Below are positions 6,295-44,172 of a stretch of DNA of 64,000 nt, piece by piece. The first letter of the stretch is position 1, and every line of letters starts with the position of its first letter. The position numbers were made by a program, and so were the translations under genes. The notes beneath the pieces were generated by a model. It was not told the origin of the DNA, searched no databases, and saw nothing but the letters and a program-made list of their open reading frames with translations. The DNA lies in IMG/VR virus record IMGVR_UViG_3300032296_003307, positions 124,001 to 188,000 of that record; one strand, written 5' to 3'.

Positions 6295-6642
6295 ATGAAT
6301 CTAAGGGATAAAATAAAAATGATACTGTCAGAGGAAGAACATTTTACTCCTGAATTTTCCGTACCACCATGGTTAAAAAGAAGGTTTAGAATGTTAGAAA
6401 TGATTGTGTTTAGAGAAACACAGTATGCTGAAAGACAAGACACATATCCTTTTTGTAAAAATTTGTTTAAGAAAAAAGAAGATTATTTTAATTACGTTGT
6501 TGATTGGGCTGAACAACATTTTGACGATATTGAACTACCAAAACAAAAAAAATTGGATATACTGAATCAATTTATGTCAGAAAACTACAAAAAAGAGTTG
6601 TATGACCTATATGAAAAAAAATGTAAGGACTTTATGCGATGA
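6295..6642 (+). CDS. Leader-bearing small helical protein (KRR..C family)
   Basis: MNLRDKIKMILSEE...WLKRR...FC. Confidence 0.75.
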   Translation: MNLRDKIKMILSEEEHFTPEFSVPPWLKRRFRMLEMIVFRETQYAERQDTYPFCKNLFKKKEDYFNYVVDWAEQHFDDIELPKQKKLDILNQFMSENYKKELYDLYEKKCKDFMR

Positions 6643-6890
6643 GAAAAGAATTAGAAACATTAGAAAAAATTCTTAACACAATGGTAAAAAGGAAATATCC
6701 TGATGACGTTTTAAAAATAGAAATTATTGACGAGTTGATATTTGACCAAGTATATGATGTTAGAGTTTATGTTATTTTAGAAAAATATGAGTCAATATAT
6801 AAATGGGAAGAAATGGAGCAAATGGTAAAAAACATTGCAAGATTTTCAGGTGTTAAAATAAACCGAGTTATTTCCGCTCAAGAACAATAG
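6639..6890 (+). CDS. Hypothetical protein (LEKILN..KRKYP family)
   Basis: 83-aa ORF, ATGA-coupled to the upstream gene. Confidence 0.7.
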   Translation: MRKELETLEKILNTMVKRKYPDDVLKIEIIDELIFDQVYDVRVYVILEKYESIYKWEEMEQMVKNIARFSGVKINRVISAQEQ

Positions 6891-6916
6891 TGGTATCAAA
6901 GGTTATTTAATATACC

Positions 6917-7240
6917 TTATTTACCGCAATTAGAAATTTCTATTTCTTTTTCCCTTCTAAAATTCTCAAACTCACTTACAAATATCATGTGATTAAGTAA
7001 CTCTTGCCAATCAAAAAAATCAGAATCGTCATCGTCATATCGTACATTGAATAAATTACCCAAAACATAGTCTACAGTAGAATGCAACGCATCATTAAAC
7101 ATATCGTAAACTCCATTTTCATATTGGTAATCACAAGGACTTAATCTCTCAACATATTCATTAAACTCACTTATAATATAATCAAAGTGTCTTCTTAATT
7201 TTACTATTTTGGACTGTGATTCAGTAATGAGTATTTTCAT
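6917..7240 (-). CDS. Leader-bearing small helical protein (RR..CDY family)
   Basis: MKILITESQ...LRR...PCDY. Confidence 0.75.
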   Translation of the reverse strand: MKILITESQSKIVKLRRHFDYIISEFNEYVERLSPCDYQYENGVYDMFNDALHSTVDYVLGNLFNVRYDDDDSDFFDWQELLNHMIFVSEFENFRREKEIEISNCGK

Positions 7241-7275
7241 ATAGAATAAATATAATAGGTTTTTATTTTACAAAG

Positions 7276-7282
7276 TATTTAT
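7276..7282 (+). promoter_or_regulatory. TATTTAT box (representative of the class upstream of leader and structural genes)
   Basis: Also at 17414, 34627, 39339, 53786 and many more, typically 4-12 nt before the start codon, on both strands. Confidence 0.7.
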
Positions 7283-7286
7283 TAGT

Positions 7287-8021
7287 ATGAATCTCCAAGA
7301 GAACATTGATAGAATTAAGGAAATGATGGGACTTATTGTCGAATCAGATGACAAAGAGGTTGTTTGTAGTAAATGCGGTTGGTCTTGGGATTTATCTGAG
7401 GGTGGTAATGACCCATATACCTGTCATGAATGTGGTCACACAAATGAAATAAAAGAAAATGATTTAGACGAATATTCAAGGACTCTAAAGAACGCAAGAA
7501 AACAAGGGAGTGGTTTAAGGTTTTCTAAAAGTGCGGTCAAGAACGCACCTTTGAGGTTTAGACCATATAACAGAGAAAATATTGAAGAAGGGGACCCTAA
7601 AGTTGGGACAGGAAAAAAACCTAAAGGTTCTGACAGAAGACTCTACACTGATGAGAATCCAAATGACACGGTTTCAGTTAAGTTTAGAACCAAAGAAGAC
7701 ATAATAGATACCCTTAACAAAGAAAGTTTTAAATCTAAACCACACAAAAGACAGTCACAGATAATTAATCTTATTCATCAACGAGTTAGAGCCGCATATC
7801 AAAACGCAAAAGACTCTGAAACCAAAGATAGGTTAAAAAGAGCATACGACTATATAGAATCTGTAAAAGAAAAATCAAAAGAAAAGACAATCCGACTACA
7901 AAAACAAGAACAAACTGAAAGCGAACTAACAGAAAAATGTTGGAAGGGATATACACAAAAAGGCATGAAAACTATGTTTGGTAAACGATACCCAAACTGT
8001 GTTAAAAAGACAAAGAAATAA
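7287..8021 (+). CDS. Leader-bearing multi-module protein (Zn ribbon, GTGKKPKGS module, CWKGY tail)
   Basis: MNLQENIDRIKEMMGL; CxxC...CxxC; the EKCWKGY...PNCVK motif is familiar from T4-like phage hypotheticals (recalled, not searched). Confidence 0.75.
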   Translation: MNLQENIDRIKEMMGLIVESDDKEVVCSKCGWSWDLSEGGNDPYTCHECGHTNEIKENDLDEYSRTLKNARKQGSGLRFSKSAVKNAPLRFRPYNRENIEEGDPKVGTGKKPKGSDRRLYTDENPNDTVSVKFRTKEDIIDTLNKESFKSKPHKRQSQIINLIHQRVRAAYQNAKDSETKDRLKRAYDYIESVKEKSKEKTIRLQKQEQTESELTEKCWKGYTQKGMKTMFGKRYPNCVKKTKK

Positions 8022-8033
8022 ATATAAAATTTC

Positions 8034-8606
8034 ATGAAAATAATAATCACAGAATCACAATACAAATCATTATTGTCTGAACAAACATCAACAAGTGATG
8101 GATGTAAAGTTTGGGTAGAATCAAAAAACGACCCAAAATACATAAAATATATAAACGCACTAAATTTGTACATGAGAGGAAAATCTATTGTTGACTTCTT
8201 TAGGTCAAATCCTGATGCCACAAATGATATTTTAAATAAAAAAGAAGATGAGTTGGTAAAAAAATACCCTGTAAATAATAGATACTTGGGTTTTGGCTCA
8301 GATAGGATATTATCAATAAATTCAATTATGGTTGGTAAGGGTCGTGCCGCACGATATGCACAACAATATCCAAAACCTGATAAAGTTTGCGTAAGACCAA
8401 CTCCTACGACAACTACAACCACTACCATCGCACCACCACCAAACACAAATGCGTCAATTCAAAAGGCAAACAGTTTATTCCAAAGGTACAATTACATGTC
8501 AACTGAAGACAAAAAAAGAGCGGTGGCGAAATACGGTGACCCAAGCAAAGTGCCATTCCAAGGGGTTGATGTTTTATTATTAAGAAAAGAATATCCAAAT
8601 ATATAA
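8034..8606 (+). CDS. Leader-bearing hypothetical protein
   Basis: MKIIITESQYKSLLSEQ; short PTPTTTTT linker. Confidence 0.75.
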   Translation: MKIIITESQYKSLLSEQTSTSDGCKVWVESKNDPKYIKYINALNLYMRGKSIVDFFRSNPDATNDILNKKEDELVKKYPVNNRYLGFGSDRILSINSIMVGKGRAARYAQQYPKPDKVCVRPTPTTTTTTTIAPPPNTNASIQKANSLFQRYNYMSTEDKKRAVAKYGDPSKVPFQGVDVLLLRKEYPNI

Positions 8607-8615
8607 AAACATGTG

Positions 8616-9134
8616 ATGAATTTACAAGAAAACATATCAAGGATTAAAGAAATGATGGGACTTCTCATAGAAAAAAGAGAAGGATGGTATAATCTTTTAA
8701 GAAAAAAACTACCAAACATGCCCGAATATGTTTTGAAAGATTGGATTTACAGAAAGGTTGATTACTATAAGGATTATGAATCTTTTAATAATTGGTTGGA
8801 TGAATGGATTGTTGGTTTAGATTGGGAATATCAAAAAGATTTTCCAATGACTATGGATATTTTTAGTGACAAAAGTAGAAAGGAATTAGAAGAAAGGATT
8901 AAGGGTTCGGTTAGGTCCGATGTTGACAGAGACGAAGAAAGACACAAAAATCAAAAAGAATTATTAAAGTTACGTGGAATATCAAAAGAACCAATTATTT
9001 TATTTAGGCATGAGGATGGTAAATACGACTTGGGTGAAGGTTGGCACAGAACGGTTCAAGCATTCATTCAATATCCTGACGGATTTATTCAACCAAATGT
9101 ATACATTGGACTTAATGCAAAATGGTTAGATTAA
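8616..9134 (+). CDS. ParB/Srx-like domain protein with leader
   Basis: EPIILF...DLGEGWHR resembles the ParB_N PI.v...i.DG.HR motif; leader MNLQENISRIKEMMGL. Confidence 0.6.
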   Translation: MNLQENISRIKEMMGLLIEKREGWYNLLRKKLPNMPEYVLKDWIYRKVDYYKDYESFNNWLDEWIVGLDWEYQKDFPMTMDIFSDKSRKELEERIKGSVRSDVDRDEERHKNQKELLKLRGISKEPIILFRHEDGKYDLGEGWHRTVQAFIQYPDGFIQPNVYIGLNAKWLD

Positions 9135-9135
9135 A

Positions 9136-9891
9136 ATGAACCTACAAGAAAACATATTAAGAATCAAAGAAGTAATGGGATTACTGTCTGAGGGAAAATC
9201 TGATAAACAGTTTTCAGGTAAAAATAGAATTATAATCATTGGACCACCAACAGTCGGAAAATCTACAGTTGCTGAAGAATTATCAAAACAACTCGGAATC
9301 GAATATGTTAAGTTAGACAAGTTACAAGAAAAAATAGGTCACGGTGATGGAAAAGAGTTGGAGTTAGTTAAAGAGGTACTATCAAACAAATTTGAAAAAT
9401 ACAACACACCATCCATATTAGATTTTGGTGGAGGACACGTCTATAATAAAGGAGTTAAAGGATTACTCAAAGATTATCCGAATGTAATATTGTTAATGCC
9501 GTCCAAGAACCAATCAAAGTCAGAAGAACTTTTAATGAAAGGAAACACCGAAAGATGGACAGGATTCATAGACCAAATAATTAAAGGGTTAAAAAGTGGA
9601 AAACACAATCATACAAAGGAAAAGGAATCTGAACTAATAGACAAACTGAAAAAGATGAAAAAGGGTGAAGGAGGAAAGTTCCACAAGAAAGATTTACCGA
9701 ACATACCTGAAATGAAAGGATGGGGAGGATTAAACTTGGATAAGGATTGGAACAAACATGTCCCTTTAACCAAAGAGGAGGATAGCATAAACAAAGAGAT
9801 TGCCAAACACACAGTTATTGTGTATGATAAGAATGGGGATAGAAAAACGCCATCAGAGATTGTAAAAGACATTAAAAAAATATTGAAATGA
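9136..9891 (+). CDS. Shikimate-kinase-like P-loop kinase with leader
   Basis: IIIIGPPTVGKSTVAEELS Walker A, D.D, and ILDFGGG, as in the aroK-like NMP kinase fold. Confidence 0.65.
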   Translation: MNLQENILRIKEVMGLLSEGKSDKQFSGKNRIIIIGPPTVGKSTVAEELSKQLGIEYVKLDKLQEKIGHGDGKELELVKEVLSNKFEKYNTPSILDFGGGHVYNKGVKGLLKDYPNVILLMPSKNQSKSEELLMKGNTERWTGFIDQIIKGLKSGKHNHTKEKESELIDKLKKMKKGEGGKFHKKDLPNIPEMKGWGGLNLDKDWNKHVPLTKEEDSINKEIAKHTVIVYDKNGDRKTPSEIVKDIKKILK

Positions 9892-10739
9892 GATTAAGAG
9901 AATCCATAAAAAGAATATTAGAGGAATACACAAAACAACTGAAAGATATGTTGGTTCCCGCAAATCCTAAAGGTAAATTACACCATTATTCAAGTTATCA
10001 AAACAGGGAAAGCATTCAAAAAAACGGTTTGATACCAAAAGTGGGGAGACAAACCACAAATTATATGTCAAAACAGTTTCCTGATGTTGAACCAATGCCA
10101 TTAATATTCACTCAAGACCCAAAACACGGTAATTTCTTCGGTGTTTATGGTAATGATATATGGGAAATAGATTTGAGCAAAGTAAATGCGAAGTGGTATC
10201 ATGACCCAATACATAAAGATGACGGAAACAATTGGGCGTTTTACGTCACGACAGACCCAATCCCACCATCGGCAATCAAACTAATTGGTTCAAATGAACA
10301 AAGAGATGATGACATGGAAGTTTATCGTCAGACAGGAAAGTTCCCAAACAGAAATGTGGAACCTGAAGAACCTAAAAAACCCGAAGAACCTGACATATGG
10401 GATGAAATATTGAGTCAAATCGGTGATGATGACTACATAACAATTCCTGCAGAGTATTTAAAAGAATCCACAAGAAGAACACTAAAGGAAATTACAAATC
10501 CAAATACCAAAAGAAGACATAATCAAATAAGACGACTTTTGATTATTATTTTGGAGAATTCAATAACTTGCGGTCCTGATTATGAACAGTATGAGAAATC
10601 TGTGCTTGATGACGTGGAAACGTTTATGAATGTTTTAGAAATAAAAGGACTAAGCGGACGTGAGGTAAAAGACCATATTGAAGAATATTTGATGTATTTT
10701 ATAAAGAGATATTACACCGAAGCCCAAGAAGATTGTTAA
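9888..10739 (+). CDS. ADP-ribosyltransferase/Tpt1-like domain plus C-terminal KRR..C module, with leader
   Basis: LHHYSSYQNRESIQKNGL...IFT...IWEIDL...IPPSAIKL pattern of His-type ART folds. Confidence 0.55.
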   Translation: MRLRESIKRILEEYTKQLKDMLVPANPKGKLHHYSSYQNRESIQKNGLIPKVGRQTTNYMSKQFPDVEPMPLIFTQDPKHGNFFGVYGNDIWEIDLSKVNAKWYHDPIHKDDGNNWAFYVTTDPIPPSAIKLIGSNEQRDDDMEVYRQTGKFPNRNVEPEEPKKPEEPDIWDEILSQIGDDDYITIPAEYLKESTRRTLKEITNPNTKRRHNQIRRLLIIILENSITCGPDYEQYEKSVLDDVETFMNVLEIKGLSGREVKDHIEEYLMYFIKRYYTEAQEDC

Positions 10740-10740
10740 T

Positions 10741-11289
10741 ATGAACCTACAAGAATCCATAAGAAGAATATTAAGGGAAGAATTAGAACATACTACATTT
10801 GAATCTTTTTTTTCAAAATACGGAGAAGATGTTTTGGAAATTATGAATAATCATTTTGATGAAGAAGTTACGATTAAAGAACTTGAAAAATATTATAATG
10901 ATGAAATTAAATATTTAAATAAAATAATAAACCAAAAACTACCAATATTTAGGTTAATAAAAGTTAATGATAATGTTTTAGAGAGTTTTATAAAATCAAA
11001 AAAAATTAAATCTGGTATATTTTGGACTTTAAATAAACAAGTAACAAAATATTGGGTATCTAGTGATTTATATGATGATAGATTTGAACTTGGTGGTGAC
11101 AATACTATTATTTTTGAGTCTGAATTATCTAATGAATTAGATATTGACATAGAAGGTACAATATTTGCTAGATTTACTTCATCATATGAAGATGAAATAA
11201 GGTTATTGGCAAATAACCCTATTAATATTAAAAATGTATTTGTTAATGGTAAAAAAATTAACATAGAAAATAAAATATTCATATCATAA
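10741..11289 (+). CDS. Possible R-S/T-E-type ADP-ribosyltransferase-like protein with leader
   Basis: LPIFR...GIFWTL...YEDEIRL motif spacing. Confidence 0.45.
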   Translation: MNLQESIRRILREELEHTTFESFFSKYGEDVLEIMNNHFDEEVTIKELEKYYNDEIKYLNKIINQKLPIFRLIKVNDNVLESFIKSKKIKSGIFWTLNKQVTKYWVSSDLYDDRFELGGDNTIIFESELSNELDIDIEGTIFARFTSSYEDEIRLLANNPINIKNVFVNGKKINIENKIFIS

Positions 11290-11744
11290 TGAACCTACAA
11301 GAATCCATAAGAAGAATATTAAAAGAAGAAATTGATTCAAAAGATATTAGTTCTTATTTGGATGTATCACCATTTTATAAATTACCATACCCATATCAAA
11401 AATCATTAATGATATTTAAAAATGAGGGAACTACAAATGATATGGAGATTAAAGATTTAATTGATGATGAGTTACAAACTTCTTTTAAAAGAAAAATGTA
11501 TTACTATGGAGTTGTCCCAATTAAATTAATAGAAGATGAGGTTACAGAACGATTAGGATGGGATAGTTTTGAGAATTACCATAAATGGTATGGTGATGAA
11601 GAAACGGACCACGGAGATTCGGTATTACCAATCATAATAGATTTTGATGATGAAGAATTAATTATAGATGGTTGGCACAGATTCCACTCCTATGTTAGAA
11701 AAGGATTAACTAAAATCCCAGTATTGGGTGTATACGTTGATTAA
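11289..11744 (+). CDS. ParB/Srx-like domain protein with leader
   Basis: LPIIID...IIDGWHRFHSYVRKGLTKIPV. Confidence 0.7.
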   Translation: MNLQESIRRILKEEIDSKDISSYLDVSPFYKLPYPYQKSLMIFKNEGTTNDMEIKDLIDDELQTSFKRKMYYYGVVPIKLIEDEVTERLGWDSFENYHKWYGDEETDHGDSVLPIIIDFDDEELIIDGWHRFHSYVRKGLTKIPVLGVYVD

Positions 11745-11745
11745 T

Positions 11746-12174
11746 ATGAACCTACAAGAAACCATAAGAAGAATATTAAGGGAAGAAACTTATTCACCTG
11801 CGGGGAAAGAATACACACCAGCAAGAGTTGTTGTTCATACATCAAATCCCGTTGTGAGAGATAATATAAAACTTACAGGGTTACAAGTTTCAGTTGGGGA
11901 ATGTTATCAAGTATACGTAAACAGAAACGAAACTAATCCCGATAAAATTAAATGTAAAAAAGCGATATTTGCCACGGATTCATTGAAAAATAGGGACATG
12001 TTTAATTCAACATATGACGATGATATTTGGTTGATTAATACTGAGTGTGCGAATGTTAAGTGGTATAAGGACAAACATTTTGATTACCCTGACTCAAAAC
12101 ACATAGTAACATTTGAAAACATATCACCTGAGTGTATCAAATTGATTCATAAAGGTACTGGTAAAAGTCGTTAA
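11746..12174 (+). CDS. ADP-ribosyltransferase/Tpt1-like protein with leader (paralog of 9888)
   Basis: VVHTSNPVVRDNIKLTGL...IFAT...DIWLI...KWYKD...ISPECIKL aligns by eye with 9888. Confidence 0.55.
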   Translation: MNLQETIRRILREETYSPAGKEYTPARVVVHTSNPVVRDNIKLTGLQVSVGECYQVYVNRNETNPDKIKCKKAIFATDSLKNRDMFNSTYDDDIWLINTECANVKWYKDKHFDYPDSKHIVTFENISPECIKLIHKGTGKSR

Positions 12175-12557
12175 TAAACAGGTGGTGTAGCTCTTTCAGG
12201 ATATATTGTTACCTCATCAACTTCATCTTCGACTTGTTCGTCAACCCATTCAGAAATAATATCAAGAATTTTGCTCACCCTTATTTTGATTATCTTTCTA
12301 AAGAAATCCACAAGATTCGGATGAACTTGTAAACTACCTATGCCATTGTGTACGGTATCGTCATCATCATCATAAGCACCACCTGGACCATACCAAATAT
12401 AATATAACATTTTATTGTCGTTTCTATCATACATTTTGATGGTGTAACTATTTTCACTATATAAACTTTGTTCTTTGGATTGATTAACGATGTTCTTATC
12501 CAGGTACTTATGAATAACATCTTTAGATTGCGTGTCGGTTATAATGTAACGAGCCAT
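12171..12557 (-). CDS. Leader-bearing hypothetical protein
   Basis: MARYIITDTQ; TATTTATA upstream. Confidence 0.7.
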   Translation of the reverse strand: MARYIITDTQSKDVIHKYLDKNIVNQSKEQSLYSENSYTIKMYDRNDNKMLYYIWYGPGGAYDDDDDTVHNGIGSLQVHPNLVDFFRKIIKIRVSKILDIISEWVDEQVEDEVDEVTIYPERATPPVY

Positions 12558-12668
12558 ATTAGATATAAATATAAGGGGTAGGGGGTTTGGGGATGGTAAT
12601 TAGTTAGATTAGTAGGTAATTTAAAAAATTAATTTTTATTTTTGATTTAAAAATTATATCTTTGTATT

Positions 12669-13262
12669 ATGGATAATGTTACTTATTTAAAAGAACAGGT
12701 GGAAAGAAAAATTACACTAAACGATTATGTTAAGGCATATTATGATTGTGATATTTTACCATTTCCTCCCGAAAAAAATAACTTAGTTAATCAAATTGCA
12801 ATTTTAGCAATTGAATATAAAAATAAACATTTAAATACCTATAAAAGAAGAATCAACGAACAAGGGAATGACCAAGAAGAACATTTGAAAAATTCTATGA
12901 ATAATATTTTAAATGGTATTTTTAAATTATTGGGGACTGGATATCCTGACGTTGGTGGTAAAGCTGAAGAACTTGAATTTCCGTTATACTGTGATTCAAA
13001 GATTCGTAAAAATTTAATTGATAAAGAAAGTATTCGCAGTTTTTATACATCTACGCCGGCAAAAAAAACTAAAAACAAAAAGGACCTTAAAACAGGATAT
13101 CACTTGTTATTCATTTTTGAACATGATGGAAACGGTAAACTAACCGGCAAATACCGAGTTTCTGATTTAAACGGTTTTATTTACACTTCATTTGGTAATA
13201 AACAAGAAGGTTCTTATAGCGACATTTTATCCCATAACAAGTTTATTGCGGAGAATCTATAA
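12669..13262 (+). CDS. Putative type II restriction endonuclease / PD-(D/E)xK protein
   Basis: YPDV...CDSK fits PD..DxK. Lies directly upstream of a methyltransferase, behind a TATCTTTG promoter. Confidence 0.4.
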   Translation: MDNVTYLKEQVERKITLNDYVKAYYDCDILPFPPEKNNLVNQIAILAIEYKNKHLNTYKRRINEQGNDQEEHLKNSMNNILNGIFKLLGTGYPDVGGKAEELEFPLYCDSKIRKNLIDKESIRSFYTSTPAKKTKNKKDLKTGYHLLFIFEHDGNGKLTGKYRVSDLNGFIYTSFGNKQEGSYSDILSHNKFIAENL

Positions 13263-13298: not shown

Positions 13299-14123
13299 AT
13301 GGACATTAATAGAATATATCATGAGGATTGTTTGAATACTATGAAGAATATGCCAAATAATTTTGTATCACTAACAGTTACCTCACCACCATATGATGAT
13401 TTAAGAACATATAATAATAAAGTTAAGGGTTTATCAACCGAATTCAACGGATACTCATTTGATTTTGAAAATATTGCACGAGAGTTATATCGTGTTACAA
13501 AATCTGGAGGTGTTGTGGTATGGGTAGTTGGGGATGCAACACACAATGGTTCAGAAACAGGAACATCTTTTAGACAGGCATTATTTTTTAAAGAGGTTGG
13601 ATTTAATATCCACGATACAATGATATACATGAAGAACAATTTTTCAAATCCTTCTTCTAATAGATATCATCAGATATTTGAGTATATGTTTGTTTTATCT
13701 AAAGGTAAACCAACAACATTTAATTCAATCAAAGACAGGAAGAATGTCTATGGAGGTCAAGTCGGTTCATGGGGTAAAAATACTGTTAGACAAAAGGACG
13801 GAACCATGAAGGAAAACACTAAAAAAGTAATAGAAGAATATGGTCAAAGATACAATGTTTGGCAATATAAAACATCTAAAAATGGACAAGAAGACGAGGT
13901 TGCTTACGAACATCCGGCAATATTCCCTATTGATTTGGTTAAAGACCACATTATTTCATGGACAAACCCTGGCGAAATAGTATATGACTGTTTTATGGGT
14001 AGCGGAACTACAGCAAAAGCAGCAACGGCATTAAATAGATTGTGGATTGGTTCTGAAATAAATGAAGAATATGTTGATATTTGCAACAGAAGACTCAATA
14101 GTATACAAACAGAAATAATTTAA
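13299..14123 (+). CDS. Beta-class DNA methyltransferase (N4-C/N6-A)
   Basis: Motif IV TSPPY precedes motif I DCFMGSGTT; HPAIFP..L and GSEINEEY also present. Confidence 0.93.
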   Translation: MDINRIYHEDCLNTMKNMPNNFVSLTVTSPPYDDLRTYNNKVKGLSTEFNGYSFDFENIARELYRVTKSGGVVVWVVGDATHNGSETGTSFRQALFFKEVGFNIHDTMIYMKNNFSNPSSNRYHQIFEYMFVLSKGKPTTFNSIKDRKNVYGGQVGSWGKNTVRQKDGTMKENTKKVIEEYGQRYNVWQYKTSKNGQEDEVAYEHPAIFPIDLVKDHIISWTNPGEIVYDCFMGSGTTAKAATALNRLWIGSEINEEYVDICNRRLNSIQTEII

Positions 14124-19374: not shown

Positions 19375-19390
19375 TTGATATTTATATTAT

Positions 19391-21006: not shown

Positions 21007-21028
21007 TTTAAAGTAATATTTATATCAT

Positions 21029-21750: not shown

Positions 21751-21762
21751 TATTTATATACT

Positions 21763-24782: not shown

Positions 24783-25250
24783 ATGAAAAACATTAACGAC
24801 TATAAGAAAAGATTTTACAACCTTATGGAATCAACCATGGGCGATGTTAGACCTTTGATATTTGAAAATGAACCTATATCACCAATTAGACCAATGACTG
24901 CAGATGAACCAATTAGCGATGAAGCGTTGAATGGTTTTACAGATGTTGGACCAACAACATACAGAAATGGTACTTGGAAAACATACGTAAAAGAAGATTC
25001 CGACGGCGGTTTTTATATTGTCGTTATGATTGATGGTGATAACGCCAGAGTTGTAGTTGAGTATGGGTCTGACAATATAATTGTTGTTGAACCTTACGAA
25101 AGGTACGATGGCGAATTTGATATGGAAGTTGAAGATGATGGTATATTTAAAATTTCAGGAATGGAAGATGAAAACTTACTTAAGACAATTGAATTAGCTG
25201 AGCGTAAAGGTAGATGGTACCAAGCGTATCAGGAATACCAAAATTTGTAA
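24783..25250 (+). CDS. Leader-bearing acidic hypothetical protein
   Basis: MKNINDYKKRFYNLMESTMGDVRP, the same leader type as the GH108 at 29997. Confidence 0.8.
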   Translation: MKNINDYKKRFYNLMESTMGDVRPLIFENEPISPIRPMTADEPISDEALNGFTDVGPTTYRNGTWKTYVKEDSDGGFYIVVMIDGDNARVVVEYGSDNIIVVEPYERYDGEFDMEVEDDGIFKISGMEDENLLKTIELAERKGRWYQAYQEYQNL

Positions 25251-25272
25251 TCTATAAAAAGTTTTTCATAAT

Positions 25273-25303
25273 AAACCCCATCCCTTGAAAGGTGGGGTTT
25301 TTT
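25273..25303 (+). terminator. Intrinsic terminator
   Basis: AAACCCCA/TGGGGTTT followed by a T tract. Confidence 0.75.
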
Positions 25304-25319
25304 GTTTTATTATTCACAA

Positions 25320-25568
25320 ATGGAAAATGACACATATTCTGCGACCGTGCAAATACAATACGTAGACGGTAGAACACACGTAAATCTATTACAACCCAAC
25401 GGACAAAATCTTCCAACTGATTTGTTAGGTAAAATATTAGCCGGTGGTTTGGCACTGGCAATTCGTGGTTCTGAAAATGAAGCGGAATACATGAAAGAAA
25501 TTATTGACTATCTTCATTCTGAATTTATCAATCCTGATTCTTTTTCTGACATGGAAAAAAGAATTTAA
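25320..25568 (+). CDS. Hypothetical protein
   Basis: ATG 25320, MENDTYS... Confidence 0.7.
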   Translation: MENDTYSATVQIQYVDGRTHVNLLQPNGQNLPTDLLGKILAGGLALAIRGSENEAEYMKEIIDYLHSEFINPDSFSDMEKRI

Positions 25569-25586
25569 TTTTATATTTATTGGGAT

Positions 25587-25892
25587 ATGAAGTTGATACT
25601 ATCAGAATCCCAACTTGACATGATAATACCTAATCAAATAAAACGTAGGTATTCTGAGTTTGATGAAATTCTTCACGAAATGTTACACAATACGGACTAC
25701 GGTAGTCAGGCGGTTGATTTCTCAAAAAGCGGATATATTAATTATATTGTGGAGGAATTGTTGTATAACACATATCTTCCCGATGGTGATACACTTCTAG
25801 GTGATTTTGAAGATATTTATATACCAATAATAAAATTTTTATTTGGACCAAAAATTGGTATTTTTTGGAGAGAGATGAATAATAGAAAATAA
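25587..25892 (+). CDS. Leader-bearing small helical protein (IKRR family)
   Basis: MKLILSESQL...IKRR. Confidence 0.75.
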   Translation: MKLILSESQLDMIIPNQIKRRYSEFDEILHEMLHNTDYGSQAVDFSKSGYINYIVEELLYNTYLPDGDTLLGDFEDIYIPIIKFLFGPKIGIFWREMNNRK

Positions 25893-25894
25893 TA

Positions 25895-26257
25895 ATGAAA
25901 ATCATTGTCACGGAATCCCAACTAAAATTCTTGTTAGAAGATGAAAACAAGTATGAATCACTTGAAAAGATTGTGTACAAGTTTTTGAAATTGATAAAAC
26001 CAAAAGGTGTTGTTGGTGTTATTTTTCATAATGATGAAGGATACGATGTGCCTTTTGAGGTTTATTTAGTTTTTGACTCTGATTTTGAAATGGGTAATGG
26101 TTCTCAGTATATTAAAATGTTAAACATTAGAGATATGGTTCATGATAAATTAAAAAAAATGTTTGGTATAGATTCATACGTTGGTGGGTTTGTTAACCAC
26201 AAAAATATTGATAATGTTGTAAACAGTAAAGTTTTGTATTTTAATGAACAAACTTAA
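25895..26257 (+). CDS. Leader-bearing hypothetical protein
   Basis: MKIIVTESQLKFLLED. Confidence 0.75.
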   Translation: MKIIVTESQLKFLLEDENKYESLEKIVYKFLKLIKPKGVVGVIFHNDEGYDVPFEVYLVFDSDFEMGNGSQYIKMLNIRDMVHDKLKKMFGIDSYVGGFVNHKNIDNVVNSKVLYFNEQT

Positions 26258-26573
26258 AGAAATATCTTTGGCGTTGGAAAAAATTTACAACACAATGGGT
26301 AATAAGTACCTCACTAGTAACTTTATTACAGAACCATTTGAGTTTAAGGTTGACGTTGTAAGAACACCAGGAGATGACTCAATGTGGGATTATGTTATAA
26401 GGGTAAAATCAACACCAAAAATGCCTGAAAGTTTAGAATACAGGGAAAAAACACCGGCATCTGTAGATGGTGTTCACAAATCCGTAGTACAATACAATTT
26501 TAAAAAATACATTAATTATATTGACCCAACTTTTGGTTCCTTCAGGAAAACCGTAGGTCTTGTTTTTGTGTGA
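26244..26573 (+). CDS. Hypothetical protein (LEKI.N family)
   Basis: 109-aa ORF overlapping the upstream stop. Confidence 0.7.
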   Translation: MNKLKEISLALEKIYNTMGNKYLTSNFITEPFEFKVDVVRTPGDDSMWDYVIRVKSTPKMPESLEYREKTPASVDGVHKSVVQYNFKKYINYIDPTFGSFRKTVGLVFV

Positions 26574-26589
26574 ACGATATTTATTGTTT

Positions 26590-26853
26590 GTGAAGATTAT
26601 CATAACAGAAGAACAATCTCTTTATTTAAGACGTAGAGATTCAGAAATATACGACTTGGTTAAATATGCAATTGAGTATGTTGACGCAACTGAATATAAC
26701 TACCCTGACTATCTTGAAGAAATTGCGTGGCAAGTTTTCGGACGTATGGCAAGTGACGATAGAAGAGAACAAAACATTAAAGATATCCTTGAGTATGTTA
26801 GAGAAAATTATGGGGAAGATATTAAATCCCACCACACCTATGCCAATGGGTAA
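26590..26853 (+). CDS. Leader-bearing small helical protein (LRRR family)
   Basis: GTG start, KIIITEEQSLYLRRR; TATTTAT upstream. Confidence 0.75.
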   Translation: MKIIITEEQSLYLRRRDSEIYDLVKYAIEYVDATEYNYPDYLEEIAWQVFGRMASDDRREQNIKDILEYVRENYGEDIKSHHTYANG

Positions 26854-26860
26854 TCCTCAA

Positions 26861-27052
26861 TCAAGGAAGGTACAGGATAAAAATGGCAAATATTAATATA
26901 AGAGTTACTACTCCGCCAACCAAAAATCCAAGGTAATATAAAAAATTATCTACATCAAATGGATTAAATTTACTCCAACCGCCTGAGGCTTTGTATATTT
27001 TGTAAACACTCAGACCAAATAACAACTCAATTAAAATTAATAGTGTACACAT
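26861..27052 (-). CDS. Small two-TM membrane protein
   Basis: Two hydrophobic stretches. Confidence 0.6.
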   Translation of the reverse strand: MCTLLILIELLFGLSVYKIYKASGGWSKFNPFDVDNFLYYLGFLVGGVVTLILIFAIFILYLP

Positions 27053-27117
27053 ATCGTTTTTTATTTAATGATATTACATATTTTTTGAATTGTCACGTTA
27101 TTGGATATTTATAGTTT

Positions 27118-27705
27118 GTGTATCTTAAACATTTAATAAAAAAGATTATCAAAGAGGAAACCGATTTACCTCCATTTATTCGCAGAAGGTTAAAAACCAC
27201 TGACGAACAAATGTGGAATGAAGTAAAAGCGTTTGCTATGAAAGGGTTTAAACCTGGAAACATTGAGGATACCGTGAGTCGTGCAATGAGAAATACGGCA
27301 TATGAAATACTTGACCCTATAACATCAAGTTTGAGTGATAAAGAGTATTATGAATTAGAAAAAAAAATGATTAGATTCCTGAAGGATAAATATTCAGATA
27401 AACTTATTGAATTTATTAGCGATTTTATCACTCCTGAAGATGACCAATATGATGGGTACAGATACGTATTTGAAAAACACTCAAATTATAGTGGTGGTGG
27501 TGCGGGATTTACTCAAGGGTTTGCCATGTGGGGTGATTTACTCACGGCATATGCGTATTGGTTTCCTGATTTGGATTGGAAAAAAATAAAATCAGACTTA
27601 GACAAAAATCCGACAAATAAAAGAATTAGATTGAAAAACGTCGGTGATAATTATAACATATATAATTATTATTTTTCGGTTATTAAAGTACCGGGTAATT
27701 CATGA
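27118..27705 (+). CDS. Leader-bearing protein (IRRR module plus second domain)
   Basis: MYLKHLIKKIIKEE...FIRRR. Confidence 0.75.
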   Translation: MYLKHLIKKIIKEETDLPPFIRRRLKTTDEQMWNEVKAFAMKGFKPGNIEDTVSRAMRNTAYEILDPITSSLSDKEYYELEKKMIRFLKDKYSDKLIEFISDFITPEDDQYDGYRYVFEKHSNYSGGGAGFTQGFAMWGDLLTAYAYWFPDLDWKKIKSDLDKNPTNKRIRLKNVGDNYNIYNYYFSVIKVPGNS

Positions 27706-28067
27706 ATATTAGAGAACAAATATCAAGAAGTAAGTCGCTTATGGGTATAACCGAATCAAGAGCCCTGAATATTTTCAGACGTAGATTTGACATGTCAAGT
27801 GAAGAGGCAAACAATTATTTTAGGGAGATTGTAGATGAAGGGTATGAGTTTTTTTCTTCACCATGTGAACATGAATCAGGTATGGAATATACAAAACTTT
27901 TCCTTCAAAATTGTGCTTACACATTTGTTTTAAGAACAGTGTACCAACACGAATTTAGTGATATTATACATGAATTGGTTGATGTTGTTTATGAAATGTA
28001 CGCACCTGATTTTTTTGATGATGTATACCGACATTATTTATATGTTAGAAAGGAGGAAGGTTGTTAA
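27702..28067 (+). CDS. Leader-bearing small helical protein (FRRR..PC family)
   Basis: MNIREQISRSKSLMGITES...FRRR...PCE. Confidence 0.75.
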   Translation: MNIREQISRSKSLMGITESRALNIFRRRFDMSSEEANNYFREIVDEGYEFFSSPCEHESGMEYTKLFLQNCAYTFVLRTVYQHEFSDIIHELVDVVYEMYAPDFFDDVYRHYLYVRKEEGC

Positions 28068-28069
28068 TT

Positions 28070-28717
28070 ATGAGATTGGACGAACAATTAAATAGAATAA
28101 CAGAAATGATGGAGGACGATAATACCCCATACGCAGTTATTGAAATAACCAAGCCATTATCTTATATGAGTCAAGATTATTATTATCAAGAAGTCCCATA
28201 TTGGAAAACAAAAAAAGATAAGATATACATTAAAAAAGGTCCATCAGGATACAAAACAATATCAACAGACAATATAAAGGTCCTAAAGGTTTTTAAAGAC
28301 GGAGACACTGAAGAATTACAGGATTATTTAAAATCACTCAGAAAGAAAAATAAGTTAAACGAAGTTAATGATGATTGGGGTACAGAAGTCGATGATAAAC
28401 GAAGAAAATCGTACATTAAGATTATTGATAAGTTTATGAAATTAAAATATCCTGGTTTTAATAAAGAGAATGTTGGTGTTTATGAAAATAATGTTGGCAA
28501 TGTTTTATATACCAAATGGTTTGAAGATAAAGGAAGAGCGTTTCTTGAGGATGATAAAAAATTTTATGCTAGATTAGATATGATTAGCCGTGAATTGATA
28601 TTAGAAAGAACAATTTTTGAAGATTTAGAAAAATACTTTGGTGATTTTGTTATGACGTTCGTTATTGATTGGTTTAATCAAGAATTCGGTGAAAATGCCG
28701 AAGGACTAACATTTTAG
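28070..28717 (+). CDS. Leader-bearing two-module protein
   Basis: MRLDEQLNRITEMME; internal KLNE junction. Confidence 0.75.
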   Translation: MRLDEQLNRITEMMEDDNTPYAVIEITKPLSYMSQDYYYQEVPYWKTKKDKIYIKKGPSGYKTISTDNIKVLKVFKDGDTEELQDYLKSLRKKNKLNEVNDDWGTEVDDKRRKSYIKIIDKFMKLKYPGFNKENVGVYENNVGNVLYTKWFEDKGRAFLEDDKKFYARLDMISRELILERTIFEDLEKYFGDFVMTFVIDWFNQEFGENAEGLTF

Positions 28718-28723
28718 AACAAT

Positions 28724-29191
28724 ATGAAATTAATAGAGTCCATAAAAGAAATATTAAAAGAGGAATCTGAACTGAAGACCAAAGTTGAAAATATGGTTAA
28801 AAGCAGAGGAATTGAATTCGCATCAAAAATGCTTGGAGATTTAGATAACGTCATTAAAATTTTGGGTTTAGACATTAATAATGTTGATGTCCAAGAAGAA
28901 CTTGTTAAGAATTTCATTATGTTTTCAAAAGATGTGGACCCTGATATAGATGTTAGTTTTATTAAGGTTTCAAGAATATCAAGAGGAACGGTAATTGCAC
29001 CATTTATTGTTAACGCAAGAGAATATGCTCTTTTTTCAAACGCCGCTAGTCTTTTTGACAGAACAGTTTGTGAACTTATGAATGATTTTTTTCCTTTTAA
29101 AACAGAACCTATATGGGAATTTGATAGAAATAAAAGTAACGATACCAAAATATTTATTAATTCAGTAGAACTAAACGAAGACGATGACTAA
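28724..29191 (+). CDS. Leader-bearing hypothetical protein
   Basis: MKLIESIKEILKEE. Confidence 0.75.
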   Translation: MKLIESIKEILKEESELKTKVENMVKSRGIEFASKMLGDLDNVIKILGLDINNVDVQEELVKNFIMFSKDVDPDIDVSFIKVSRISRGTVIAPFIVNAREYALFSNAASLFDRTVCELMNDFFPFKTEPIWEFDRNKSNDTKIFINSVELNEDDD

Positions 29192-29209
29192 GACCAATAA
29201 AAATTTAAA

Positions 29210-29497
29210 ATGAAAATAATAATAACTGAGTCACAATTAAAATATTTTATTAGACGAAGAGCTAAGTGCATCGAAAATTGGATTGAGAGATTAGAGAATG
29301 GCGATATTATTATGCCATTACTACCAGCCACGTTAAATTGGTCTTCATATAAAATTATATTAATTGCATACGCCCTGACCCATTGTGGTACAAATGTTAC
29401 CAAATATGATGAAGAAAAATTTAATTCGGTTGAAGAAGAATTTGGTGACAGATTATTTAATTGGTACGTAAACGAAAAAAATAGAACAACAAAATAG
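29210..29497 (+). CDS. Leader-bearing small helical protein (IRRR..C family)
   Basis: MKIIITESQLKYFIRRRAKC. Confidence 0.75.
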   Translation: MKIIITESQLKYFIRRRAKCIENWIERLENGDIIMPLLPATLNWSSYKIILIAYALTHCGTNVTKYDEEKFNSVEEEFGDRLFNWYVNEKNRTTK

Positions 29498-29547
29498 TTT
29501 TTTATTTTGGTAATTTTTAATATATTTGCATAATAAATTTAATTATT

Positions 29548-29787
29548 ATGTCAAAACCAATATTTGTCGTTAGATTCCCATATTCAGAAGAAAAAAGAGA
29601 TGTTTATTTGAATTTTGTTAAGCGAATATCCAATCAATTAACCGACTATCACGTTTTAGCTCCTATGGATAACAGTGTCGAGCGTGTTGAATTCGAATGT
29701 TTTAATGTGAAAGATGTGCCCGAAACGGAAATTAATGAAATCAAAGACATGATTTCCAATATGTTGGAAGAAACAAAAAACAAATAA
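29548..29787 (+). CDS. Hypothetical protein
   Basis: 79 aa; TATATTTG box at 29521. Confidence 0.7.
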   Translation: MSKPIFVVRFPYSEEKRDVYLNFVKRISNQLTDYHVLAPMDNSVERVEFECFNVKDVPETEINEIKDMISNMLEETKNK

Positions 29788-29788
29788 T

Positions 29789-29965
29789 ATGTTTTCTATT
29801 TGGTTAAAGGGTACAATTGTGTTTATTTTTGGACTTTGTGTTCATGACACAATAAAAACACGAAAGGAAATTCGAAAAGGTAACGTTCAATGGGTTGCGT
29901 GGAAAGGAAAATATGATTCTGTTTATTTAAAAAAACAAGAACAGTTAAAAACCTCACAAAAGTGA
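29789..29965 (+). CDS. Small membrane protein (58 aa, not in ORF track)
   Basis: MFSIWLKGTIVFIFGLCVHD... read from the sequence. Confidence 0.5.
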   Translation: MFSIWLKGTIVFIFGLCVHDTIKTRKEIRKGNVQWVAWKGKYDSVYLKKQEQLKTSQK

Positions 29966-29996
29966 GGTTTTTTTTTACCGTATATTTATATTGTGT

Positions 29997-30977
29997 ATGA
30001 GAATTATTGATGAATATAAAAAAAGGTTCTTTATATTGTTAGAGTCTGAAATGGGTGATGTAAAACCCATTACCAATGACACTGAAGAATCCGACGCCGA
30101 ATCTGTTGTATCAAAAATTGAGGGTGGTGATTTTGAATCTTTGAATAATATGCCGGTTGACATGGACTTAGCAAAAGAAGTCCTACAAATTCTTTCAACA
30201 GAGGACCCGCAACTTAAAGAAAAACTTAAAAATTACATTCAAAGTCAAACCTCAGAACTATCTGAGGGTATAAATAAAAGGTCACTTTTATATGCTCTTG
30301 GATTTTTATTGTTTAGTTCTGGAGTTGCCGTTGGATACAATATAAAAGGAGATTCATCAAACAAAGAAACGGTAAAAACAGAAGTTAAACCTGAAGGTTC
30401 TGTTTCATTTGAAAACGCCCAAAAAATTGTTAAAATTAAAGAGGGTGGTTATCAAAAAAATCGTACTGATGCGGGTAACTATATAAAAACAAAAAGAGGT
30501 AAAAAATTAATTGGAACCAAATATGGTATTGCCGCACCAACATTACAAAATTGGTTCAGAAAAACTGGTAAAATTTCTAAAAAAGAAACAATAACTAGTG
30601 AAGATATGAAAAATTTGGACTACCAAACCGCAACAGAAATTTTTAAAAATGAGTATTGGGATAAAAATAATTTGGATGTTTTAAACAATCAGTCTTTTGC
30701 AAACTTAATATATGATGGAGTTGTTATTCATGGACCAAATGGAATGGCGGAGGCATTAAATCAGGCTTTGGAAAATCAAGGTCTTGAATCTCCGAGCGGA
30801 TTCTCTAATAAATTTAACGTTATAAATGATTTGGATACGGAAGAGCAAGAAAAACTATTCAATCAGATAAAAAAAGAACGAAACGATATATTATTATCAC
30901 AAAGTAGAGCAGAAAGAAGAGAGTTTGGTGATGGTTGGGATAATAGATTAAACTCTTTTGTGTATTCACCAAATTAA
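29997..30977 (+). CDS. Glycoside hydrolase family 108 lysozyme with leader and hydrophobic segment
   Basis: EGGYQKNRTDAGN...GTKYGI catalytic motif; C-terminal FGDGWDNRL resembling PG_binding_3. Confidence 0.8.
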   Translation: MRIIDEYKKRFFILLESEMGDVKPITNDTEESDAESVVSKIEGGDFESLNNMPVDMDLAKEVLQILSTEDPQLKEKLKNYIQSQTSELSEGINKRSLLYALGFLLFSSGVAVGYNIKGDSSNKETVKTEVKPEGSVSFENAQKIVKIKEGGYQKNRTDAGNYIKTKRGKKLIGTKYGIAAPTLQNWFRKTGKISKKETITSEDMKNLDYQTATEIFKNEYWDKNNLDVLNNQSFANLIYDGVVIHGPNGMAEALNQALENQGLESPSGFSNKFNVINDLDTEEQEKLFNQIKKERNDILLSQSRAERREFGDGWDNRLNSFVYSPN

Positions 30978-31002
30978 ATTTTGATAATAAAAAAATTATT
31001 AT

Positions 31003-31010
31003 TACCTTTG
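31003..31010 (+). promoter_or_regulatory. Bacteroidota-type -7 promoter (TAnnTTTG) with TTG 19 nt upstream (representative)
   Basis: Also at 4013, 12657, 29521, 50016, 51994 and 52623 on +, and upstream of 15767, 50975 and 62484 on -. Confidence 0.8.
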
Positions 31011-31014
31011 TGAC

Positions 31015-31401
31015 ATGGGTTCAGTTATTAGTTATGTAGATTGTCCTAATTGCGGACAAGAGTGTTATGATGATTATTATTATAAGACAAATGAAAGTTA
31101 CGTAAATTGTGGTAATTGTGGATATCATCATTCAGTAACATTATCGGATGTTGAAAAAAATTGGGAGGATATTACTCAGGACGATTATATCATCACTGAA
31201 ATAAAAAACCCTTATGGTTCTTACAAATACAAATATATTGGTGATGTTGCAACCATTTTTGGTAGTTTGGAAAACGAAGAACAGGCTGAAGAATTTAAAA
31301 AAGAGATGATTTCCGAACAAGAAACTATAGAATTTGCTCAAATAAGTAGATATGTTAATGGCGAATTTTCAATAATATCATTAGTTGAATCTACAAAATG
31401 A
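31015..31401 (+). CDS. Zn-ribbon protein
   Basis: CPNCG...CGNCGY; TTG-N19-TACCTTTG promoter. Confidence 0.7.
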   Translation: MGSVISYVDCPNCGQECYDDYYYKTNESYVNCGNCGYHHSVTLSDVEKNWEDITQDDYIITEIKNPYGSYKYKYIGDVATIFGSLENEEQAEEFKKEMISEQETIEFAQISRYVNGEFSIISLVESTK

Positions 31402-31664
31402 GTACCGAAGGTGAATTAAAATTCAGAAGAAGAGTTGAGACGGTTTTTTCCGATATGGTAGATACTTTTTTTGCCGATGGAGAACCGTGTAAATTAAGTC
31501 CTGAAATGTTTACAAGAAAATTAGTGTTTATGGTATTACACGAATATAATCACCATTACCCAGATAATAATTACGATTTTTTTGAATTTAAGGATATGTT
31601 AATGGAGTATTTAGAACCAAAAGCAATTGCGGTTTGGAACAAATACTGTAAGAACAAAAGGTAA
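31398..31664 (+). CDS. Small helical protein (FRRR..PC family)
   Basis: LKFRRR...EPC. Confidence 0.7.
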   Translation: MSTEGELKFRRRVETVFSDMVDTFFADGEPCKLSPEMFTRKLVFMVLHEYNHHYPDNNYDFFEFKDMLMEYLEPKAIAVWNKYCKNKR

Positions 31665-31685
31665 TCAACATACTATTTATAGTTT

Positions 31686-31940
31686 ATGGGAAAAACTATA
31701 AGATTAACAGAGTCTAAATTGGTTGAGTTAATTGAATCTATAATAAAAGAAGACTATTACGATTCAAACAAATTATATAACCGTGAATATATTGTTTTTA
31801 AATTAAAAAACGGACCTAGAGAATTAAGAAAATATATTAAAACTTTACCTGAAATTGAATGTAGAGATAGTCAGGGTAATAAGGCGATATGTACTAAAAT
31901 ACCACAAGTTATTCATGTTTTTTTAACAGGTAACTATTAA
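31686..31940 (+). CDS. Leader-bearing hypothetical protein
   Basis: MGKTIRLTESKLVELIESIIKED. Confidence 0.8.
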   Translation: MGKTIRLTESKLVELIESIIKEDYYDSNKLYNREYIVFKLKNGPRELRKYIKTLPEIECRDSQGNKAICTKIPQVIHVFLTGNY

Positions 31941-31952
31941 CAAAGTTTTATT

Positions 31953-32402: not shown

Positions 32403-32403
32403 T

Positions 32404-32682: not shown

Positions 32683-32722
32683 AAGATATAAATATCAAAA
32701 TAAAACTATTTATCAATAAATC

Positions 32723-33550: not shown

Positions 33551-33577
33551 TAGATTTACTTGGTATATTTATAACAT

Positions 33578-34423: not shown

Positions 34424-34465
34424 TTTTGGGTCTAATTACATTATTTTTGAATAAAATTAAAAATC

Positions 34466-34606: not shown

Positions 34607-34639
34607 AATTTAATCTATAACTTAGGTATTTATAGATAT

Positions 34640-43198: not shown

Positions 43199-43208
43199 AA
43201 AATATTAA

Positions 43209-44150: not shown

Positions 44151-44172
44151 AATTAAAAAACTATAAAATAAA

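Follow-up and report, generated by a model that had tools for sequence, protein, structure and literature searches.

The IMG/VR virus record IMGVR_UViG_3300032296_003307 (268,739 bp) encodes head proteins of the T4 type, including a Gp23-family capsid protein and a Peptidase_S77 prohead protease. The stretch of this record analysed here, bases 124,001-188,000 (64,000 nucleotides, "the window"), carries six abutting open reading frames (ORFs) on the plus strand, designated g1 to g6, in which the stops and starts of neighbouring genes touch or overlap (Table 1; coordinates refer to the window unless marked as record coordinates). Each begins with a common leader peptide, MNLQE(N/S/T)I.RI.., which takes the variant form MRLRESIKRI in g3 and is followed by a payload. 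An initial annotation had described six consecutive co-oriented genes with one shared leader at 8616-12174, and ORF calls together with a hidden Markov model (HMM) of the leader confirmed this arrangement exactly. The 14-residue HMM scored 23.7-27.5 bits on g1-g6, 26.5 bits on the upstream gene g0 and 19.8 bits on a gene at 28724, and its next-best match anywhere in the record reached 4.7 bits; eight genes of the record carry the leader, which is 13-19 amino acids (aa) long. Because g0 matches the HMM, the array reaches upstream to 7287, and the unit considered here is 7287-12174, gX included. In a scan of 6600-12800, no terminator-like sites were detected in the array stretch, and promoter-like sites showed no excess over the shuffled expectation. 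This arrangement is best explained by a single operon, made up of g1-g6 and of g0 and gX upstream, which encodes small accessory enzymes of an uncultured T4-like giant phage.

The leader is conserved at the level of the peptide. Its shared residues are spelled by different codons in g0, g1 and g2, and across related loci the conserved residues use several synonymous codons (200 distinct leader DNAs), which indicates that the constraint acts on the peptide. When IMG/VR was searched with a codon-degenerate DNA pattern for M-N-L-Q-E-x-I-x-R-I, at least 119 loci were found, and contigs of 200-335 kb hold many of them. The leader starts at least 245 ORFs in these loci, and the 207 unique ones fall into at least 78 payload clusters. 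Pfam matches were nearly absent among 56 cluster representatives, the exceptions being a peptidoglycan-binding domain, a kinase, an AAA domain and three matches to ART-PolyVal that fell below the cutoff (25.9 vs 31.2 bits). The leader strings were absent from the papers of the literature library that was searched.

Two forms of the leader can be distinguished, type A with the consensus MNLQE[SNT]IRR[IV]L[RK]E-E and type B with the consensus MNLQENI.RI[KRQ][ES][MV]MG..[IL].E. Every leader ends in [IL]-x-E, and in either form conservation breaks off directly after this motif, whose Glu is E13 for type A and E17-19 for type B. The T4 prohead protease gp21 works inside proheads and cuts Alt after ITE-6 and LTE-619 (PMC5694885), and its self-site is LIE-9 (PMC9026906); further T4 sites are LTE-65/A in gp23 and ..LLRE/S (LRE-10) in gp24 (here and below, a slash marks the site or the end of a leader or module). 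Exactly one copy of Peptidase_S77 was present in nine of nine large leader-bearing records tested, and two copies are present in this record. The capsid proteins of six members of the lineage have an invariant L-I-N-E/A in the propeptide region. Alignment of both capsid proteins of the record with T4 gp23 left the capsid maturation site ambiguous.

Junctions of a related kind occur inside longer ORFs. In related long ORFs, payload modules are joined by hydrophobic-N-E/S junctions, so that one leader could load several modules. The ORF of locus L119 (178-3348, plus strand; 1065 aa) comprises about nine small modules separated by ..MNE/S, ..LRE/S, ..LNE/N, ..IME/S and ..INE/S. In separate searches, seven of the nine had homologs, which start right behind an N-terminal leader (e.g., MNLQESIRRILREPVNE/STFF..) or behind ..NE/S in other long ORFs, and the P1 residue at polyprotein junctions is Glu in nearly every case. 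The ORF of locus L010 (1478-4273, plus strand; 933 aa) joins an HxGH cytidylyltransferase/NMNAT-like module, a nucleotidyltransferase, a zincin (HELVH), a g1-like ParB and a HAD-like module; NMNAT-like enzymes comparable to the first of these recur in cyanophage virion proteomes. Homologs of g3 carry in-frame copies of the leader in their interior. In P0004 such a copy joins the ADP-ribosyltransferase (ART) domain to a domain like g6, and in P0003 and P0006 to the C-terminal module of g0; the g6-type module is embedded in the polyproteins P0004 and L119. The C-module of g3 recurs behind MKIIITE/ (as in locus L029, where this gX-type leader precedes a homolog of the module), ..ELICE/ and ..INE/S. 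The common part of these is the [IL]-x-E ending, and the leader types are therefore interchangeable with only this ending in common.

The upstream gene g0 bears a type-B leader, MNLQENIDRIKEMMGLIVE/S, followed by a CxxC..CxxC zinc-ribbon-like segment, for which the Pfam matches are weak, and a C-terminal module. The DNA of this module is about 80% identical to that of many T4-like cyanophage genes. One of the proteins that contain it is ORF29 of cyanophage S-SCSM1, which is annotated as a virion protein; mass spectrometry was used to determine the virion proteins of this phage, and the match is a further hint at packaging.

The initial annotation had proposed that the array is a virion-delivered toolkit acting at the start of infection. 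At the level of sequence motifs, this proposal gains indirect support from the [LI]-x-E ending of the leader, a motif that T4 gp21 cuts, the junction motif of the polyproteins and the constant presence of the S77 protease. We favour, with somewhat better than even confidence, the view that the leader acts as a propeptide for capsid targeting, loading cargo that the protease processes. The leader would dock each payload to the core of the assembling prohead, in the manner of the capsid-targeting sequence (CTS) on the internal proteins and Alt of T4, and the gp21-type S77 prohead protease would remove it at the terminal [LI]-x-E. In the polyprotein relatives, one leader would load several modules, which the protease would separate at the hydrophobic-N-E/S junctions. 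Once freed, the enzymes would exit alongside the DNA. Their action on nucleic acids, proteins or nucleotides of the host would precede phage gene expression. Docking, cleavage, packaging and injection, as well as all enzymatic activities and targets, are inferred.

The DNA of the leaders also suggests another explanation, in which the leader is chiefly a cassette-junction element that serves recombination, gene conversion, shuffling and perhaps translation starts, and the proteins stay unpackaged. They would then be expressed in the ordinary way and work in the infected cell, as ModA and ModB of T4 do. About 34 bases of leader DNA are nearly identical in g4, g5 and g6, the codon for I7 is nearly always ATA, and fusions and fissions at leaders are frequent. 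Leader subtypes are exchanged between orthologs, as those of g5 carry type A, type B or unrelated N-termini, and array content varies among relatives, with G005 retaining g3 and g5 only. A junction element of this kind would not readily explain why residues are kept through synonymous codon changes or why the internal copies are in frame. The junctions that are reduced furthest keep just the ..NE/S peptide motif, which is too short for recombination, and unrelated leader types have just the [IL]-x-E ending in common. We regard this as an unlikely account of what the leader chiefly does; a cassette-junction role is compatible with capsid targeting, and the leader may well play both.

The polyprotein junctions indicate that processing is likely but do not indicate where it takes place, and the leader could accordingly be a cleavable propeptide that masks toxic enzymes or targets them elsewhere, such as to the membrane or a replication site, with removal by a phage or host protease and no loading into capsids. 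Masking is plausible in that a cell producing ARTs and kinases could be damaged by them, and in the models of g3 and g5 the leader forms an N-terminal helix separate from the domains. Against this, the prohead protease is the only protease consistently found with the leader, the T4 CTS unites targeting and a cleavable propeptide in one element, and a reading of the leader sequences revealed no signal-peptide-like or membrane-like features. The chances of this explanation appear slim. Capsid targeting with removal of the leader in the prohead remains our preferred reading.

The structure of g3 was modelled with AlphaFold2 (model m100fe94d1137, built on 13 homologs), and the model is confident for residues 21-150 (N-domain predicted local distance difference test (pLDDT) score about 85). 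In Foldseek searches of the PDB, this N-domain matched KptA/Tpt1 (E 6e-4), and VIA gave KptA/Tpt1 at Z scores of 9.2 and 8.7, the match to KptA (Z 9.2) having a root-mean-square deviation of 1.9 Å over 85 residues. Only the NAD-binding lobe of KptA/Tpt1 (chain residues 86-180) aligns. The next structural matches were DarT1, Scabin, pertussis S1 and Arr-2, and the BFVD and AFDB databases returned DarT/DUF4433, Tpt1 and PARP-domain proteins; a profile search of PDB sequences with the ART domain of g3 gave no match. On the strength of the model, the N-domain of g3 is an H-type ART fold of the Tpt1/DarT/PARP type. Only the leader precedes the ART domain, so the RNA-binding lobe and the R-H-R-R tetrad of Tpt1 are absent and an assignment of g3 as Tpt1 itself was rejected. 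The "His-type ART/Tpt1-like" label of the initial annotation is accordingly retained for the ART fold and dropped for Tpt1. The C-terminal half of g3 is helical and was modelled poorly (pLDDT about 50), and its structural matches were discarded as meaningless.

The second His-type ART-like domain that had been proposed, g6, is a paralog of g3 (33% identity over 142 aa, E 2e-10), and its language-model features in the Atlas correspond to Arr-ms and PARP at 0.90. Residue H33, corresponding to the strand-1 His (H-x-[ST]) of H-type ARTs, is invariant in the g3/g6 homologs, within HHYS in g3 and VHTS in g6. Of the candidates for the catalytic acidic residue that such ARTs carry in strand 5, E93 is conserved in the g3-type proteins and is replaced by L, F or V in the g6-type proteins, and the D95 position is D or N. 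The initial annotation had the toolkit modifying host proteins or nucleic acids; judged by analogy, the latter is the better-fitting half of this suggestion, as the fold type of g3 and g6 more often acts on nucleic acids or small molecules than on proteins.

The motifs of g4 suggest a probable ART of the R-S-E type. Arg, W-[ST] and E-x-E, described at first as an R-T-E ART-like pattern, occur in the expected order and are kept across 19 relatives found by exhaustive HMMER search, in which R71, G92, W95, E150 and E152 are invariant. A profile alignment of g4 with the arginine ART Vis pairs these motifs with YR, F-T-S-T-S and E-x-E (EAE) of Vis at a sub-threshold E of 0.29, and the Atlas features of g4 point to DUF4765, DRAT and NarE at 0.82-0.90. 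One relative of g4, P0055, reaches 2256 aa and joins a g4-like ART to a GNAT and an SprT-like domain. The g3 and g4 families showed no relation by hhalign. No link between g4 and ART-PolyVal is claimed, as two payloads with ART-PolyVal matches gave either a local alignment at GIFWT (17% probability) or nothing.

For g5, the model (m41b8db532d05, from 17 homologs, pLDDT 85.7) gave a consistent set of structural matches. Nearly all of the top 28 PDB hits by Foldseek belong to the ParB/Srx superfamily, the best being the pNOB8 ParB N-domain (E 7e-3, probability 0.97), with sulfiredoxin, SbnI, serine kinase (SerK) and Noc among the others. VIA placed Osa first (Z 5.1), followed by PadC, Srx, SbnI and KorB, and the AFDB matches were ParB/Sulfiredoxin proteins. 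The profile search of PDB sequences yielded only a sub-threshold lead, SbnI at E 0.63. The motifs DGWHRF, which includes the G-x-x-R nucleotide-binding motif of the superfamily, and DHGDS are invariant in the family. The predicted structure therefore points to a divergent ParB/Srx fold, for which the scores are modest and the consistency across matches is convincing. Modelling followed by Foldseek, run on g3 and g5, thus returned the ART and ParB/Srx folds respectively.

Two ParB-like domains had been proposed in the array; that of g5 is borne out by its modelled fold, and the tie of g1 to it is weak. Both proteins bear a PII..GEGWHR-type motif. The direct sequence link between them has E 0.018, and hhalign of the two families gave 35% probability (E 4e-4) with PII..GWHR aligned, a result driven partly by the leader. 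The Atlas features of g1 indicate ParB_N at 0.91, and no Pfam or PHROG match was found for it. A single-protein scan of IMG/VR with g1 found one locus only; seven relatives were retrieved from related loci, two of them within long fusion ORFs.

The payload of g2 was alone among g1-g6 in giving a usable match in Pfam, PHROGs and NCBIfam. It matches SKI in Pfam (25.6 bits, cutoff 22.1), as well as AAA_18 and AAA_33, and contains a Walker A motif. An ortholog in L046 bears a type-B leader. The kinase models of NCBIfam, including the AroK and AroL equivalogs, fell far below their cutoffs on g2. As SKI passes its cutoff and AroK and AroL fall short, g2 is placed at the superfamily level as a P-loop kinase-like protein, which upholds the P-loop part of its earlier description as shikimate-kinase-like; shikimate kinase proper was rejected.

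The payload data bear on one further alternative, that the proteins are packaged but non-enzymatic, with degenerate domains serving as DNA-associated filler or as scaffold-like internal proteins. The variation of g6-type proteins at the Glu position of g3 and the weak ParB matches of g1 and g5 would fit such a role, as would the commonest payload family, a basic "RRR" helical module without an enzyme signature that makes up 80 of the 207 unique leader ORFs. Residues of catalytic type are nonetheless invariant across divergent relatives of several payloads (R, W-[ST] and E-x-E in g4, H33 and, as D or N, D95 in g3/g6), as are DGWHRF and DHGDS in g5, and g2 has its Walker A motif. A purely structural role is, on balance, very unlikely.

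Besides the leader DNA shared by g4, g5 and g6, several observations weigh against reading the array as injected enzymatic cargo. The [LI]-x-E motif is short and common by chance, and it takes weight only from where it stands, at the edge of conservation and between modules. Neither a late promoter of the T4 type nor TATAAATA lies ahead of the array, and with TATAAATA missing there late expression could not be argued. Some conserved N-terminal leader is found on about half of the genes in window 1-35300, and the tally of tagged genes there, dozens with leaders of several types, far exceeds the number of T4 cargo species, although SPN3US heads contain about 50 proteins (PMC7411985). Among the payloads, the ParB/Srx matches of g5 are low-scoring (TM about 0.3, Z at most 5.1), the assignment of g1 as ParB/Srx-like is weak and only possible from its sequence, the probable ART assignment of g4 comes from motifs, and g6 and its orthologs vary at the Glu of g3. 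A tblastn search of 50,697 GenBank phage records with g1, g5, g6 and the "RRR" payload gave no match. The nearest cultured capsid proteins, from Flavobacterium and Microcystis phages, reach about 43% identity across only part of the protein.

A further difficulty concerns the record itself, which contains two divergent, syntenic T4-like head modules, at record 25078-34976 and 228247-237947, with 35-55% aa identity between them. Each comprises terminase, portal, S77 protease, scaffold and capsid protein; in the second, the protease is encoded at record 233341-234051 and the scaffold and capsid proteins at record 234386-237947. Relatives have a single head module, orthologous to the second (68-79% capsid identity, compared with 45-47% for the first), and the record is broadly collinear with the relative G005. 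The two modules may reflect chimeric assembly, or one of them may be a genuine addition.

Leaders of other types are present in the window (Table 1). The leader of gX belongs to a group with the consensus MKIIITESQ(L/Y)K, which resembles the ITE-6 site of T4 Alt. Another, MKK[IV]V[RK]LTESDL.R[IV]VKRV[IL]KEE, starts at least nine genes and contains two [IL]-x-E motifs, LTE-9 and LKE-22. Two further leaders have the consensus M[KR][KR]F[VI]ITE[ED]EKK and ..YKKRF..L[LM]ES.MGDV[RK]P.

The sequence TATAAATA and its complement are enriched across the window (30 occurrences vs 11.8 expected). On the plus strand, the complement TATTTATA often lies a few bases 5' of a start codon and may be a promoter-like or translation-start motif. 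Elsewhere in the window, an ORF with an SPPY motif (..LTVTSPPYDD..) looks like an N6/N4 DNA methyltransferase, an RNA ligase matches PHROG 968 (E 2e-84), and a pair of neighbouring tRNA-Ser genes has the anticodons GCT and TGA. The region of a 1288-aa ORF (record 163.6-171.6 kb) contains highly repetitive coding repeats, which by tblastx recur at record ~223 kb and ~266 kb and are probably fibre-like or collagen-like.

Table 1. Positions of the genes, motifs, leaders and other features of the window (window coordinates; ART, ADP-ribosyltransferase)
Feature	Position	Strand	Description
g0	7287..8021	+	Leader-bearing gene upstream of the six-gene array
g0 C-module	7938-8018		CW.GY..GMKTMFGKRYPNCV; CWKGY...GKRYPNCV from 7938-7952 onward
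gX	8034..8606	+	Within the operon; other short leader, MKIIITE/SQ
g1	8616..9134	+	Leader MNLQENISRIKEMMGLLIE/ (8616-8672); possible ParB/Srx-like payload; GEGWHR (9033-9050)
g2	9136..9891	+	Leader MNLQENILRIKEVMGLLSE/ (9136-9192); P-loop kinase-like payload; Walker A GPPTVGKST (9241-9267)
g3	9888..10739	+	Leader MRLRESIKRILE/E; predicted ART-fold domain, linker, internal degenerate leader and helical C-module
g3 ART-fold domain	9948-10337		Residues 21-150; LHHYS (9978-9992), DIWEID (10155-10172)
g3 region beyond ART domain			Acidic/proline linker; internal degenerate leader LKESTRRTLKE/, residues 191-201 (10458-10490); helical C-module, residues 202-283
g4	10741..11289	+	Leader MNLQESIRRILRE/E (10741-10779); probable R-S-E type ART by motifs; R71 in IFRLI (10945-10959), GIFWT (11014-11028), EDEIRL (11188-11205)
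g5	11289..11744	+	Leader MNLQESIRRILKE/E (11289-11327); predicted divergent ParB/Srx-fold payload; DGWHRF (11667-11684)
g6	11746..12174	+	Leader MNLQETIRRILRE/E (11746-11784); small predicted ART-fold payload; VVHTS (11830-11844), DIWLIN (12022-12039) without the Glu of g3
MKIIITESQ(L/Y)K leader	8034, 19790, 25587, 25895, 29210, 34640	+	
MKIIITESQ(L/Y)K leader	7240, 12557	-	
MKK[IV]V[RK]LTESDL-type genes	17426, 18105, 18850, 19391, 20578, 21029, 21412, 21763, 31686	+	
M[KR][KR]F[VI]ITE[ED]EKK leader	about 700, 22569, 23898		
..YKKRF..L[LM]ES.MGDV[RK]P leader	24783, 29997		
TATAAATA/TATTTATA examples	19379-19386, 21017-21024, 21751-21758, 27106-27113, 29983-29990, 33566-33573, 34627-34634, 54934-54941		
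ORF with SPPY motif	13299-14123	+	Putative DNA methyltransferase
RNA ligase	52635-53726	+	
Two tRNA-Ser genes	58219-58437	-	
Repetitive coding region	~39700-47500		Region of the 1288-aa ORF

If the leader is a loading tag, the payload clusters represent a catalogue of at least 78 candidate injected effector families, most of them without a known domain. Injected proteins would act before any phage gene expression, and such effectors would therefore be likely counter-defence factors. The hydrophobic-N-E/S junction rule would allow cargo to be predicted from metagenome sequence alone. The T4 CTS has already been used to package foreign proteins into capsids, and the leader described here could serve as a compact natural tag for the same purpose. 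The packaged ART of T4 is Alt; pre-loaded cargo with DarT/Tpt1-type ART folds and ParB/Srx folds, if confirmed, would widen the repertoire of virion-delivered enzymes beyond it. A bolder and distinctly tentative extension is that a clade of uncultured T4-like giant phages has made the CTS into a general modular cargo system, in which any domain set behind a leader, or between the hydrophobic-N-E/S junctions of a polyprotein, would be loaded, cut free by the S77 protease and injected. Such a system would deliver dozens of interchangeable pre-made effectors, including DarT/Tpt1-like ARTs of the nucleic-acid type, as instruments of viral offence rather than of host defence.

The closest known parallel is the T4 CTS, a propeptide of 10-19 aa that is common to the otherwise unrelated, fast-evolving internal proteins and Alt, docks them to the prohead core and is then removed (PMC9026906, PMC3012670). 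Like T4 IPI-III and Alt, the genes described here have a short propeptide ending in [LI]-x-E on unrelated accessory proteins; as in T4, a gp21-type S77 protease is encoded, an ART-type gene is among the tagged set, and gene content is hypervariable between relatives. Unlike the T4 CTS, the leader has another sequence, is longer (13-19 aa) and far more conserved, and exists as several types; dozens of genes are tagged in each genome, and the payload families number at least 78. A further difference is the polyproteins, in which several modules are joined by internal junctions of the cleavage type, an arrangement without a described counterpart in T4; the packaging of the present proteins is a prediction.

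The payloads recall the polyvalent proteins that Iyer et al. (2017) described from phages and conjugative elements, which are predicted to be packaged and in which ParB, ART and kinase domains recur (PMC5512222). Zincin/SprT peptidases and nucleotidyltransferases are likewise shared, as is the predicted role as early effectors that are injected. Polyvalent proteins combine two to fifteen effector domains, and the relatives L010, L119 and P0055 are similarly multi-domain; in the window only g3 is of this kind, with two modules. In contrast to polyvalent proteins, the domains in the window are mostly separate genes with a leader each, and no fusion to MuF or portal was seen. The junctions resemble prohead-protease sites and would not need an embedded metallopeptidase.

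The head-internal proteins of phiKZ and SPN3US offer another comparison, as their propeptides are cut after Glu, the N-termini of paralogs are conserved and a substrate may have multiple sites. These phages differ in having S80 proteases, an [AGS]-x-E motif and propeptides of more than 100 aa, and their cargo is mostly virion RNA polymerase subunits and proteins without an assigned function, as opposed to the small ART, ParB and kinase modules found here.

At the level of the individual domains, the predicted folds of g3 and g6 are like the NAD-binding ART lobe of Tpt1/KptA, DarT, Arr and PARP, with g3 differing from Tpt1 as described above. The motifs of g4 correspond to the R-S-E signature of ARTs of the Vis, C3 and cholera toxin type. 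The model of g5 combines the ParB/Srx core and a G-x-H-R motif, without the helix-turn-helix and dimerisation domains of ParB. By sequence, none of these ART-like and ParB/Srx-like payloads attains the threshold of a family. Relative to both the CTS cargo of T4 and the polyvalent proteins, the proposed system differs in its scale and in the logic of its junctions.

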